Shown here in pieces: positions 38,712-55,346 of a DNA stretch of 64,000 nucleotides. The notes under the pieces are model-generated. The model had not been told where the DNA came from, did no database searches, and saw only the letters and a program-made list of their open reading frames with translations. Within the stretch, counting starts at the first letter, position 1, and every line of letters begins with the position of its first letter. Location: the NCBI GenBank assembly GCA_002269645.1, contig NIVC01001794.1:172790-236789 (forward strand), given 5' to 3'. Source of the stretch: Macrostomum lignano (lineage: Eukaryota). The position numbers and the translations under genes were made by a program.

Positions 38712-39515
38712 TCAAATACAAATGTCGAGACAAAATGCCCAGATCCCTCTTGTGTTATAAATCAAGTCAAGGGGATATAAAATTGGAATTCCTGGAAATG
38801 GAATTTGACTCACTGTCGCCTGGACTGCTCCCGCTGCATCTCCGAGCGGATGGCCATCAGCGGGCTCAGGTAGTTCCTGTTGAGCCAGCCCTGCGTGTAG
38901 GCCATGACCTCGATCAGCTGCTGGCCCCTGCCCGCCTGTCGCTGCAGGGCCATCATCTCGGCGCCGCCAGCTCGAATGCCGAGGGCCGTGACTGTCTCCG
39001 TCAGCGAGGAGAACTTCAAGAATACGTTGCTCTTCCCGTCGGGTAGGCTGGACACGGGGATGAACACCGGCCTGTTGTGTCAAGTTTTTAAAGCTTCGAA
39101 AATGTAAAAAGTGAATGAGCACGCACACTTATACGCACACAGGCGCACATGCTCTCATACGATGTGCAATACAGGCAACTTCATAACAAAATCGTTCTTA
39201 TTACGAGTATTAATGGTCCTTGGCTAGAAATAACAAAACCCAGTGCAGTCACCCCGGTACAGTCTCCACTTACACTTTATCAGGCGTGAGCTCCACGGCT
39301 AGGCCAATAACCAAGAGCCTTTCCCGTTGGGTCAGGCTGCGGTACAGCCTGTAGTTGGTGAAGTTGGCTGGCACGCAGTCGCCCAGCAGGCAGGAGATGC
39401 AGTGCAGGTAGTACATCAGCCTGGCCACATTGTCGTTTGGTACGTCTACCGTAGTGCCAGAGTTTTCAATGCGCAGTCGTTGGTTCTCAAATTGGGCAAG
39501 AGCTAACTGACTCAT
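38712..39515 (-). CDS. uncharacterised ~180-aa family, copy A
   Basis: Exon 1 39515-39274 (MSQLALAQFENQRLRIE...RLMYYLHCISCLLGDC...TPDKV), phase-2 intron, exon 2 39071-38814 (PVFIPVSSLPDGKSNVFLKFSSL...WLNRNYLSPL). The last exon is uncertain (possibly ...GIWAFCLDICI* ending 38712). Confidence 0.8.
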
Positions 39516-39914
39516 GGCGGCTTGTTTGGCAAGTTGACTTGGGCACCTGTAGAGGTTTTTAATCGTTTTTACCTCATTTTACCCGTTTTTATAGGCTAAA
39601 ATGTTTCGCCACTCGAGATTCGATGCTTGGGTGCAAGCAAACCAGTTAATGCATAAATAAACTGCTGTACTAATTAATCATTTTTGTTTTTGTGCGCGAG
39701 GTAAACCGTCTGTTTATTATAGTTTGTGCAATATAAAAATATGAGTACAATCTAGTCTCTAGATCTCTAGAATCTAGAGATGAGGAGGAAAAGAGAGATG
39801 AAAGGAGAGAAGGGGGATGGAGGGAGAGAAGAGAAAGAAAGCGAAGAAGAGACAAACATTGAGCAAGCCGCATTGCTATTGTGAAGTTTCAATCGACCCG
39901 AGGCCGGATAGAGA

Positions 39915-39964
39915 GGCTTTGCGCGCCGCATGCGGTCCGCGGGCCGGGGTTTGCCGACCCCTGG
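39915..39964 (-). mobile_element. single end of a hAT/Charlie-like DNA transposon
   Basis: Reverse complement CAGGGGTCGGCAAACCCCGGCCCGCGGACCGCATGCGGC resembles Charlie/MER58-type termini; the partner end was not found. Confidence 0.5.
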
Positions 39965-40781
39965 TTCAGTACTGTTGCGCCCGGGTGCACTTGCACCGAT
40001 GAGCAATCTCTGGCTCTCGGTCAAGTGTGCCCGACACTGCACTCCCACCCCTCCCGGCCGCTTACCTGCGCCAAGCCCCCCGTTCCGTCTGCGTCAACCC
40101 CCCCCCCAGTTGCACCCACCCCACTGTCTGTTAGGTCAGCCGGTTTTGGCTGGCTGCGGCTCCAGTGCGCCCCCTCAATCGCCCTGCGATTGGCTGGTGG
40201 TCCAGCTAATCGGTTTGTATTCTTTCCCCCTCCAATCGCGACCCCGACTTTGTAACTTTTATAAGACGATCGTAATTTTGGCTAGCTGGGCCTGGGGTAG
40301 CGATACCCCAGGGCTTAACCAGCTAGCGTAAATACAAATGTGTGCAGGAGCGGCGGTAGGGGAGGCATCTTTTTGGTTGAATTGTGCAAGACACAGCCAT
40401 AAGTTCTAGTATTGCAATCAGACCCGAAGTTATACTCGGTTACTCAGAAGTTACCCAGCCAGAACTGAAGAGCGAAGTTGAGAGAAGCCACAGAATATAC
40501 ACAGAATGGTGTTATCAAAAAATACACGTGCAGGCAGCACAAGCTAATCGAAAAGTCTTTTACGCTTATCCTTATCTCTTTACATTGACTTTTAATACAT
40601 ATAGCCTAGGGCGCTTAGCTTAATCTACGTCAATTTAATTGCACTACTTTTCGCCACCTCATCATTAGTAGTCTATGAACATTTTATTCCGATAACTAGT
40701 TTAAGAGCTAATTCACCATTCTGTGTATATTCTGTGTCCCTTACTGCCGTCGCCGCTGCTTCGTGAAGATAAAAGAGTGAG

Positions 40782-41524
40782 TATCTATCTATCTATCTAT
40801 CTATCTATCTATCTATCTATCTATCTATCTATCTATCTATCTATCTATCTATCTATCTATCTATCTATCTATCTATCTATCTATCTATCTATCTATCTAT
40901 CTATCTATCTATCTATCTATCTATCTATCTATCTATCTATCTATCTATCTATCTATCTATCTATCTATCTATCTATCTATCTATCTATCTATCTATCTAT
41001 CTATCTATCTATCTATCTATCTATCTATCTATCTATCTATCTATCTATCTATCTATCTATCTATCTATCTATCTATCTATCTATCTATCTATCTATCTAT
41101 CTATCTATCTATCTATCTATCTATCTATCTATCTATCTATCTATCTATCTATCTATCTATCTATCTATCTATCTATCTATCTATCTATCTATCTATCTAT
41201 CTATCTATCTATCTATCTATCTATCTATCTATCTATCTATCTATCTATCTATCTATCTATCTATCTATCTATCTATCTATCTATCTATCTATCTATCTAT
41301 CTATCTATCTATCTATCTATCTATCTATCTATCTATCTATCTATCTATCTATCTATCTATCTATCTATCTATCTATCTATCTATCTATCTATCTATCTAT
41401 CTATCTATCTATCTATCTATCTATCTATCTATCTATCTATCTATCTATCTATCTATCTATCTATCTATCTATCTATCTATCTATCTATCTATCTATCTAT
41501 CTATCTATCTATCTATCTATCTAT
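40782..41524. repeat. (TATC)n microsatellite, ~740 bp
   Basis: Appears perfect over its whole length. Confidence 0.99.
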
Positions 41525-52625: not shown

Positions 52626-53164
52626 TACAAATATCGAATATTTAAATTTTTAATTCATAGGTAATCGTGAACTTACTCTGATGAGTGCACAGCGCCCCTG
52701 ACTGTACCATACCATCGCCATTGAGAAATTAAAAAATTAGTAAACAAAAAAAATTAGTCTGAAGCCCTCACTCATTTTGATACCTTGTAAAAGCAGAGAC
52801 AATGAAGACACCACCCACGAGAAAAGCTGCTTCTTCTGTAAGAATGCAAGTATTTCCAGTTGCAGTGTGGCCATGAGGTACAAAAAAACAATAAAGAGAC
52901 GGGTGAAGAGATTCGTGCCAACAAGCGCTTCGACACTTGACCCCCTCTCCAGTACTACTCGAGTGGGCGTACTCAGGCTGGTCTCATTGAGCAGTTCTTA
53001 ACTTGGGTCTAAAAGGTTTGCACGCAATTCTTAGTGCGAATATCTTTTGCTTGGCTGGAGGGTGGGGTCCTGTCAAATTCCTTGAGTTATTTTATAGAAT
53101 TCCTGTCTAAAAGTTTGTCACCGCTTAAAAAAGCTGTTTATAGATCCGCCTTGCGCTTCTGTGC

Positions 53165-53675
53165 TTCAATCTGTGTTTCTGTGATCTGTGATTCTGCGAG
53201 TCTGTGATTCTGTGATTCTGTGAGTCTGTGAGTCTGTGATTCTGTGATTCTGTGATTCTCTGATGTGATCTGCGATTCTGTGATTCTGTGATTCTGTGAT
53301 CTGTGATTCTGTGATTCTGTGATCTGTGATTTTGTGAACTCTGATCTGTGATTTTCTGATCCGTGATTCTGTGATCTGTGATCTGTGATTCTGTGGTTTT
53401 GTGATTTGTGTATCTGTGATCTGTGATTCTGTGATTCTGTGATTCTCTGATGTGATCTGTGGTTCTGTGATTTGTGATTCTGTGATTCTGTGATTCTGTG
53501 ATTTGTGATTCTGTGATCTGTGATTCTGTGGTTCTGTGATTTGTGATTCTGTGATCTGTGATTCTGTGATTCTGTGATTCTCTGATGTGATCTGTGATTC
53601 TGTGATTCTGTGATTTTGTAATCTGTGATCTGTGATTTTGTGATCTGTGATTCTGTGATTCTGTGATCCGTGATT
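53165..53675. repeat. (TGTGATTC/TGTGATC)n degenerate 7-8-bp repeat
   Basis: Direct tandem array. Confidence 0.95.
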
Positions 53676-54496
53676 TGTTTTTCTTGCTCAGTTTGGCTTA
53701 AGGATTTCTGAGGATCTTCATGCAGGCATATTTTGCCTGCTAAGTTGTATCAAAACGTCTGAGAGAGCCTCTATAACCATGTTTGGCCAACTTGGCTGAA
53801 AGTATTAGCCAGATATACAGGTAGAAAGTGCCAGCAGACGCCTCCGAGTTTATTCGGAGTTCACGTGGAGTTCAACGGTACTTTTGCGTAGCTGCCAGCT
53901 CAGTGCACAGGACTGCAATTTCACCAGGCCGAAACTTCACATTGCAGAAATGGCTTGCACTCTCTTTCGTAACTATCGTAGCTATATTTCGGCAATGTGA
54001 AGTTTCGGCCTGGTGAAAGCGCTCCGTTTTTCTGACGTACTGACAGCGCATTTTGTTGCCATGCCGCGTGTTGCAGCTTGAAATACAGAAACAGCGAGTT
54101 GGCACAGGGTCGATTCTTAAATCTAAAAGAGATTTTTAGATTTCTCTTTAAAGGCGTTGTCGCAGTTGATAACAGCTCAGAATTCGCCTCTTATTGAAGA
54201 AATTGTTGTGCATATTTTTCTAATTCCAAATTCAAGTGCACTTTATTGTACCTGCGCTAAAAAAGTGTTTGGTGAGGATGTCAAGATATTTTTCGTGCAT
54301 TATCTCCAGGATATTCAAATAAGATTTTGTGAAAAGCACCGGGCTAGCAAATTTCTCAGTTTAGCCAATAAGAATGCTGAGGAGTCCAGATTGATTAAAA
54401 TGCATAAATACGCCGGCTCAAAAAGCAGAAATAGCAGATAGAGAAATTTTATCGACTTGCTTAACTCAACAATCTCTTCAACGGCAAGCAGCAGCA

Positions 54497-55346
54497 ATGG
54501 CCGCCCTAGCGCACATGCAGCAGCGCCAGCTGCAGGTTGAGAAAACTGGCAGCCGAACGACCGTCCCCAACCACAGCGTTGGCCGGCTCATGTACTACCT
54601 GAAGTGCATGACGGACGTGCTTGGTGACTGCATTCCAGCACACCTGACCAACTATTCCAATTGCTACGGGCTGAGCTACTCGGACAGGCAGGTGGTCATC
54701 GAGATTGCAAGGGAATATCCGCCAAGCAAGATGTGAGATTTACTGGCTTTGGATTGGGGTGTTCAGCTGCTTCCCGCATGTCCTCTTGCAACATCCGCGT
54801 TGTTGTTACCTGTTACATCCGGGTCATCAAGTATCCCAATTTTACCTGTTACATCCGGGTCATCAAGTATCCCCATTTTACCTGTTATATCCGGGTCATC
54901 AAGTATCCCTATTTTTACCGGCAACCTGCAACCACCCACAGACCGCTCTTCATTCCTGTTGATGACGCTGGAGACAGCAGCAACGACTTCCTGACGTTCA
55001 GCTCCCTGGAGGAAACGATCACAGCGCTGGGCATCCAGGGCGACGGAGAAGCGATGATGGCACTGAGACGTCAGGTGTCCAACCAGCACCTGTTCAAGGT
55101 GATGGTCTACGAGGATGCCTGGGCTCGCAACAACTATTACGGACCACTGAGGGAGATTCAGCGGGAGGAGGAGCAGAGGCGATACCGGCAGCTGCAGGCC
55201 GCTCCCTCGTACGGCAGCAGGAAAAAGTGCGTGAGCTCTCGCGTTAAAAAATGCTGGACTTCCTATTCACCGCTTAGACCAGAGCAATTAAATTCTTAAG
55301 TATCTTATTTTACGCTTTTAGAAGTTCCACCTGTGTCCTGCTGTGA
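54497..55346 (+). CDS. uncharacterised 181-aa family, copy E, intact, with C-terminal CaaX (RKKSSTCVLL*)
   Basis: Exons 54497-54732, 54942-55226 and 55322-55346 (two phase-2 introns) total 546 nt, in frame. The intron has a 36-bp repeat in three copies. Confidence 0.88.

Follow-up and report, generated by a model that had tools for sequence, protein, structure and literature searches.

A five-copy gene cluster in the flatworm Macrostomum lignano and the widespread, putatively membrane-anchored protein family to which it belongs

What kind of protein is encoded by a small cluster of related genes that all carry a prenylation-type tail in a separate last exon? We asked this of a 64-kb stretch of the Macrostomum lignano genome (assembly GCA_002269645.1, contig NIVC01001794.1, positions 172,790 to 236,789 of the forward strand), called the window below and used for all coordinates. 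An initial annotation, made from the sequence alone, had described five paralogues there (copies A to E) encoding a protein of ~180 amino acids that ends in a CaaX box, i.e., a Cys at position −4, two residues a1 and a2, and a terminal residue X. Our reading, to which we assign a probability of about 0.6, is that these genes encode a domain that a geranylgeranyl group holds at the cytosolic face of a membrane, where it would probably serve as a binding or adaptor module, and that the domain represents an old, widespread and undescribed eukaryotic family.

A tblastn search of the window with the spliced products of copies A and E recovered five loci and no sixth (E-values 1e-13 to 1e-62), on the strands first annotated (A, B and C minus; D and E plus). 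Window positions 43638–51948 agreed at 100% identity with the contig record. We read each locus and fixed exon ends on GT..AG. All copies shared a three-exon plan with GT..AG introns throughout. The phase-2 intron already noted after exon 1 was confirmed, and the second intron also proved to be in phase 2 in each copy. The tail exon has 25–31 nt of coding sequence and encodes SS-x-C-a-a-L*. The gene models were:

Copy A: 38616..39515, minus strand; intact, 174 amino acids with an open spliced reading frame; exons 39515-39274, 39071-38814 and 38640-38616; ends RRQSSGCSLL*.
Copy B: 42109..45309, minus strand; degraded; exon 1 at 45309-45068, exon 2 deleted, CaaX exon at 42139-42109; ends NSSSGCTLL*.
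Copy C: 46638..48948, minus strand; intact, 177 amino acids; exons 48948-48707, 47423-47163 and 46668-46638; ends RRNSSSGCTLL*.
Copy D: 49862..51626, plus strand; pseudogene-like; exon 1 at 49862-50068, exon 2 at about 51251/51262-51485, tail exon at 51599-51626; ends EESSSSCTVL*.
Copy E: 54497..55346, plus strand; intact, 181 amino acids; exons 54497-54732, 54942-55226 and 55322-55346; ends SRKKSSTCVLL* (GSRKKSSTCVLL*).

The cluster thus extends over 38616–55346; its start had been set at 38712, and the CaaX exon of copy A (38616–38640) lies to the left of that position. The tiny last exons of E (RKKSSTCVLL*) and D (SSSSCTVL*) read as annotated. The head-to-head arrangement ascribed to the cluster was found for the C/D pair only, with start codons ~900 bp apart, and does not describe the other copies. 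Both conserved blocks attributed to the five paralogues were present, the second in four copies rather than five, since copy B is without exon 2.

We then considered the tail. All five copies have the Cys at −4 (CSLL in A, CTLL in B and C, CTVL in D, CVLL in E). In CaaX boxes a small or aliphatic a1, an aliphatic a2 and Leu or Phe as X favor geranylgeranyltransferase-I (GGTase-I) over farnesyltransferase; a box with the Cys at −4, an aliphatic a2 and X = Leu is prenylated by GGTase-I, followed by cleavage of -aaX and carboxymethylation. With a2 = L or V and X = L, the five copies match the rule for the GGTase-I class. No hydrophobic tail was found in any of them (the maximum 19-residue Kyte-Doolittle mean was below 0), and they do not belong to the tail-anchored class.

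Is the short exon used? It is already part of the NCBI model of copy C: our translation of C is identical to NCBI protein BOX15_Mlig013201g1 (P0002), and the 2311-bp gene span agrees with that model. Two UniProt models of copy E (P0001 and P0011) match exons 1 and 2 at 100% identity, run through the second donor and end ...RKKCVSSRVKKCWTSYSPLRPEQLNS; the CaaX exon is absent from both. Further evidence came from L003, a 996-bp intron-free contig of run SRR28338164 with flanks resembling untranslated regions. Its single open reading frame (ORF) encodes a 65%-identical relative ending SSSGCVLL*, and its DNA is ~75% identical to copies A and C. L003 is most likely the spliced transcript of a related species or of a distant paralogue, with the CaaX exon in use. 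A lack of transcripts containing this exon, which the initial annotation had named as something that would refute its reading, was not borne out, as the exon is included both in a curated gene model and in a contig resembling a cDNA.

How far does the family extend? The first protein search returned only five relatives, among them P0004 with a transmembrane tail and P0005 ending CTIC. A profile made from these five was scored against 1.84 billion representative proteins and gave 1019 clusters at E ≤ 1e-3, of which 589 remained at E ≤ 1e-10. Copies A, C and E scored against the family profile at E = 1e-77 to 1e-85. Names of members were taken from two further searches with broader alignments and cover only part of the 1019 clusters. 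They came from M. lignano itself, including the unlinked paralogue BOX15_Mlig025960g1; the sponge Amphimedon queenslandica; the bdelloid rotifers Adineta vaga, A. ricciae, A. steineri, several Rotaria species and Didymodactylos; the bivalves Crassostrea, Saccostrea, Pinctada, Ruditapes, Potamilus and Sinanodonta; and the ciliate Tiarina. The view of a family that had merely expanded locally does not survive this distribution, which runs from sponge to ciliates. All named members are annotated as ‘uncharacterized’, ‘hypothetical’ or ‘unnamed’, and a literature search by locus tags, LOC identifiers, and Macrostomum plus CaaX found no paper on the family or on any named member.

The family signature is V-P-N-x3-A-[KR]-L-M-Y-Y-L-x-C ... 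N-Y-x-N-[YW] ... S-P-D ... N-x-F ... K-I-M-x-[FY]-K-x2-W-x3-N-Y-x2-P, and we provisionally refer to its bearers as ‘LMYY domain’ proteins. Its motifs were complete in copies A, C and E; copy B retained the N-terminal motifs only, and those of copy D lay in disrupted frames. The genes of rotifers and bivalves have no introns, so that the CaaX mini-exon counts as a feature of gene structure in Macrostomum. In three relatives (P0012, P0013 and P0021) the domain occurs two or three times ahead of a single CaaX box.

Next, we compared the tails of 268 relatives, fragments included. A strict CaaX ending was present in 145 and a hydrophobic tail anchor in 37, mostly bdelloid rotifer proteins. Given a Cys frequency of 3.3% in the family, 145 CaaX endings are far above chance; in the alignment, the CaaX Cys column was conserved in 193 of 195 relatives. 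Among the 145, a2 was Ile in 116, and X was Leu in 60 and S, M, Q, A or C (the farnesyl type) in 63. One to three additional Cys stood directly upstream in 39 CaaX cases (e.g., CCCTIL), a classic pattern of proteins that are both palmitoylated and prenylated. The tails of the Macrostomum proteins contain two to three basic residues and lack additional Cys.

Other relatives carry a different device in place of the anchor, namely a C-terminal FYVE finger (P0124, P0136, P0265) or a LITAF-like zinc ribbon (P0329). P0058 and P0121 have instead a transmembrane segment followed by DUF285/leucine-rich repeats (LRR); these two are receptor-like, with the LRR/DUF285 part extracellular and the conserved domain on the cytosolic side. 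A ZZ finger has been added in P0050, P0090 and P0139. Outside the domain, no feature is more consistent than the anchor. That four or five membrane-targeting devices, unrelated to one another, occupy the same position argues for an action of the N-terminal domain at the cytosolic membrane surface. Membrane tethering, as first proposed from the CaaX tail, is strongly supported by this interchange of CaaX box, transmembrane tail, FYVE finger and LITAF-like ribbon at one C-terminal place.

In the domain itself, compared over 234 aligned sequences, Asn96 was invariant (234/234), Tyr35 and Tyr36 were present in 231–232, Cys39 was present in 85%, and A31, L33, M34, Y35, Y36, P78, F98, M137, W143 and P151 were near-invariant. 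None of the conserved positions in these 234 sequences was a His, Asp, Glu, Ser or Lys. Position 91 is Cys in 67% of relatives and Pro in Macrostomum.

For structure and profile work we used the annotated copy C (P0002). Its AlphaFold model, built on a deep alignment, had a predicted local distance difference test score (pLDDT) of 83.5, above 90 in the core, and a predicted template modeling score of 0.78. The model contains helices at 29–43, 55–60, 63–75, 104–111, 118–126 and, the longest, 141–171, with short strands at 84–86, 96–101 and 134–139. The Macrostomum clade has an insertion of ~10 residues (113–117 and 123–127 of C), where pLDDT was ~58. Foldseek searches with two AlphaFold models found no solved structure at E ≤ 1e-3 (best query-normalized template modeling (TM) score 0.26) and no viral predicted structure at E ≤ 1e-3. 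Pfam gave nothing for copies A and E at E ≤ 1 and no recurrent family among 122 relatives; no transposon domain appeared in these same scans. Sequences of solved structures, searched by phmmer and by profile, yielded nothing significant (best E 0.03), and a scan of 2.9 million viral contigs with the family motif brought up no relative. The initial annotation had been unable to name a domain and had called the fold unknown, and it had named a confident match to a well-characterized family or a transposon protein as a refutation; none matched, and the model, although confident, found no counterpart in the solved or viral libraries. As far as the sequences and the models go, we could not place the domain in any known family or fold. 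Among the candidates considered were E2/UBC, longin/SNARE and Bcl-2-like tail-anchored families, which were dropped for want of Foldseek and Pfam support.

From these data we propose the following model. The intact protein would comprise a compact alpha/beta domain of ~150 amino acids, a long C-terminal helix leading into a short Ser-rich linker, and a CaaX box with terminal Leu. GGTase-I would prenylate the CaaX Cys, the last three residues would be removed and the Cys methylated, and the product would be held at the cytosolic face of a membrane. Proteins with a single prenyl group and neither a strong polybasic stretch nor a palmitoylated Cys usually reside on endomembranes. With only two to three basic residues and without a palmitoylatable Cys upstream, the Macrostomum proteins are more likely to sit on an endomembrane than on the plasma membrane. 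There the domain would most likely act as a non-catalytic binding or adaptor module, holding a partner and catalyzing no reaction, since none of the conserved residues is of a catalytic type; the fusions to FYVE and the receptor-like ones also point to partner binding. We thus infer prenylation, localization and adaptor role from the sequences.

A bolder version of this model can be put forward tentatively, as something we would not expect to hold in full. It sees in the family an ancient domain, with a fold absent from the solved-structure library, that would always stand at the cytosolic membrane face through interchangeable devices (CaaX, tail anchor, FYVE, LITAF-like, LRR receptor-like). 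It would then be a new membrane-proximal adaptor or signaling module whose logic resembles that of TIR and death domains, with tandem expansions in some invertebrate lineages.

Several points weigh against our reading of the cluster. A remote known relative could have been missed, as the fold comparison covered the solved and viral libraries. An enzyme using backbone atoms, Asn96 or Cys39 would be compatible with the lack of conserved catalytic residues. Given the clade-specific insertion, the function of the Macrostomum proteins may differ from that of typical members. Lastly, the disruptions of copies B and D rest on one long-read assembly.

In the sequence, these disruptions read as follows. 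In copy B, exon 2 is missing: the 717 bp of C at 47036–47753 align to only 334 bp of B (42490–42824), which are AT-rich, microsatellite-bearing and non-coding, and an insertion of ~1 kb lies at 43632–44662. Joined straight to the tail exon, exon 1 of B stays in frame and encodes 90 amino acids ending NSSSGCTLL*, without the central and C-terminal part of the domain; this could be a truncated lipid-anchored protein or simply a dead gene. The ORF of copy D begins with the ATG at 49862 and stops after 25 codons. Its conserved exon 1 sequence is spread over three frames by two frameshifts, the second of which is a 13-nt deletion relative to E, a size that is not typical of long-read error. One extra base stands at the start of exon 2, and the ORF of exons 2 and 3 is still open. 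Repeat DNA in intron 1 of D (50147–50314 and 50847–50930) recurs at 52360–52614, ~1 kb downstream of D; this DNA probably represents a dispersed element that brought the intron to its length of 1.2 kb. The cluster is made up of three working genes (A, C and E) and two decaying ones (B and D), in line with the birth-and-death pattern first described.

We used pairwise Nei-Gojobori estimates of nonsynonymous (dN) and synonymous (dS) divergence to compare the copies. The dN/dS ratio was 0.26 for A-C (dS 0.32), 0.41 for A-E (dS 1.13), 0.34 for C-E (dS 1.34) and 0.30 for E-D over exons 2 and 3 (dS 1.10). This range of 0.26–0.41, obtained from a comparison that the initial annotation had recommended while suspecting defense or stress effectors, indicates purifying rather than diversifying selection. 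Judged from the sequences, the duplications are old, and A, B and C form a younger group. Exon 1 of A and of C, compared over 39264–39515 and 48697–48948, share 96% DNA identity with dS 0.07, against dS 0.65 for the remainder of the genes; the end of the high identity at exon boundaries suggests gene conversion limited to exon 1.

What else could the family be? If its members were innate-immunity or stress effectors, membrane-anchored and expanded and turned over under pathogen pressure like the CaaX-bearing guanylate-binding proteins, one would expect recurrent arrays such as those seen: five copies here, two in tandem in the rotifer-like contig L001, two in L004, and adjacent locus tags of members in Adineta vaga and Potamilus. 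The decay of B and D fits this too, as do the relatives that join an extracellular LRR/DUF285 part through a transmembrane segment to the cytosolic domain. In L004, a rotifer-like, 484-kb eukaryotic metagenome contig (6041–8164, 10001–10528 and 12674–13359), the two tandem intronless members are found 2 kb downstream of a gene for a RIG-I-like helicase. No second case was seen, however, and gene neighborhood is weak evidence in eukaryotes; moreover, the ratios above show no diversifying selection, and no literature on the family was found. We regard an effector role as an outside chance worth keeping in mind. A new class of membrane-anchored enzyme, acting for instance on lipids or on a membrane protein through Asn96, Cys39 and Tyr35/36, appears less likely still. 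The near-complete conservation of these residues (85% for Cys39) and the constant placement of the domain at the membrane would suit such an enzyme. Against it, conservation does not extend to any His, Asp, Glu, Ser or Lys, most of the conserved residues are hydrophobic or aromatic, which suggests a structural core, and Foldseek found no similarity to enzymes. In addition, the Cys at position 91 has been lost in the Macrostomum copies, and yet these are under purifying selection.

Two further explanations can be given very little weight. Non-functional or selfish DNA, whether an ORF carried by a transposon or virus or a group of dead pseudogenes, might account for the tandem amplification, the intronic repeats, the two broken copies and a Ty3/gypsy element 16 kb away. 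It is hard to reconcile with three intact copies whose introns are conserved and which evolve under purifying selection, or with conservation from sponge to ciliate. The Pfam scans, the viral contigs and the viral fold library all returned nothing of transposon or viral kind, and the repeats lie within introns rather than flanking the genes. The least credible proposal is that of a Ras effector with a Ras-associating (RA) domain, which derives solely from the automatic UniProt name of copy E (A0A1I8J2K3), ‘Ras-associating domain-containing protein’. The Pfam RA model matched neither A nor E at E ≤ 1, and RA was not among the 25 most-matched of the 35 Pfam families weakly matched by the 122 relatives. 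The predicted five to six helices and three short strands do not form a beta-grasp, and no ubiquitin-like structure occurred among the top 50 Foldseek matches listed, none of which reached E ≤ 0.001. We therefore rejected the UniProt name, which failed both on the sequence model and on the fold, the two tests that could be run. The tethered binding or adaptor module remains the reading that we prefer.

Comparison with known systems separates what is familiar in these proteins from what is not. Like Rho and Ras small GTPases, they carry a C-a-a-L ending behind a C-terminal stretch that contains Ser and basic residues: Cdc42 ends ...KKSRRCVLL and RhoA ...KKKSGCLVL, and both resemble the ...SRKKSSTCVLL of copy E. 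The upstream Cys of many relatives, as in CCCTIL, recalls the palmitoylated type represented by H-Ras, and the expected processing (prenylation, -aaX cleavage and methylation) is the same. In contrast to these GTPases, the sequences lack the P-loop GxxxxGK[ST] and a G domain and have no Pfam Ras match, which sets them apart from the Ras superfamily, and their predicted fold is unrelated to solved structures. The guanylate-binding proteins GBP1, GBP2 and GBP5 share the CaaX anchor (GBP5 ends CVLL) and occur in tandem clusters with gain and loss. They differ in having a dynamin-like GTPase domain and ~590 amino acids, as opposed to ~180 here; our copies gave no sign of positive selection. In SNAREs, a C-terminal lipid anchor (Ykt6) and a transmembrane helix (others) are interchangeable, as they are in 145 versus 37 of the relatives here, and the functional domain faces the cytosol as well; however, the family has no longin or SNARE domain, the 122 proteins giving one stray weak Pfam SNARE match. 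TRAPP/longin-type chains reached Foldseek TM-scores of only 0.12–0.15. RA proteins have nothing in common with the family beyond the automatic name of E, differing in the Pfam RA match and in the ubiquitin-like beta-grasp. The logic of membrane anchoring is thus of a known kind, whereas the domain that it carries was not placed in a known family or fold.

If our reading is correct, the flatworm cluster offers a tractable entry to a family of more than 1000 clusters that has no name, Pfam model, structure or literature. Its architecture predicts that the domain works at the membrane surface, and since transgenesis, RNA interference and mRNA injection exist for M. lignano, anchor and function are directly testable there. 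CaaX-based membrane tags are among those tested in M. lignano embryos (PMC12633465). A solved structure could add a new fold, and the family's apparent distribution over sponge, spiralians and ciliates could be of use in work on gene loss and lineage-specific expansion. The analysis also corrects a misleading automatic annotation (‘Ras-associating domain’) and shows that the UniProt models of E are without the functional C-terminal exon.

The remaining features of the window were:

7883-8326 (region 7516-8341), minus strand: disintegrin-domain exon (Pfam E = 2e-15), running into a long microsatellite of the CTGT/CAGA type.
19034-23005, minus strand: Ty3/gypsy-type long terminal repeat retrotransposon with an uninterrupted 1323-amino-acid gag-pol ORF (protease, reverse transcriptase, RNase H and integrase domains).
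25132-26382, minus strand: single ORF of 416 amino acids with several hydrophobic segments and no Pfam match.
57927-59171, minus strand: annexin gene, its four annexin repeats distributed over two ORFs, immediately downstream of the cluster.

By its sequence, the gag-pol ORF at 19034–23005 looks intact, and the 416-amino-acid ORF may encode a multi-pass membrane protein. A repeat of ~220–270 bp occurs in intron 2 of B (42249–42470) and of C (46745–47012), with a third copy on the opposite strand outside the cluster (57409–57677), at 86–90% identity. It contains a GGTTCGATTCCC motif resembling the tRNA B-box and, on the basis of that motif only, may be a (tRNA-derived) short interspersed element; ARAGORN called no tRNA in the window. 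Very long simple repeats lie at 516–1000, 23265–24112 and 40723–41532. A tetranucleotide repeat of ~800 bp stands between A and B; the others are a (GA)n tract and a minisatellite of ~800 bp whose repeat unit is 30 bp long. Intron 1 of E contains three tandem units of ~33 bp (ACCTGTTACATCCGGGTCATCAAGTATCCC...) at 54800–54915.

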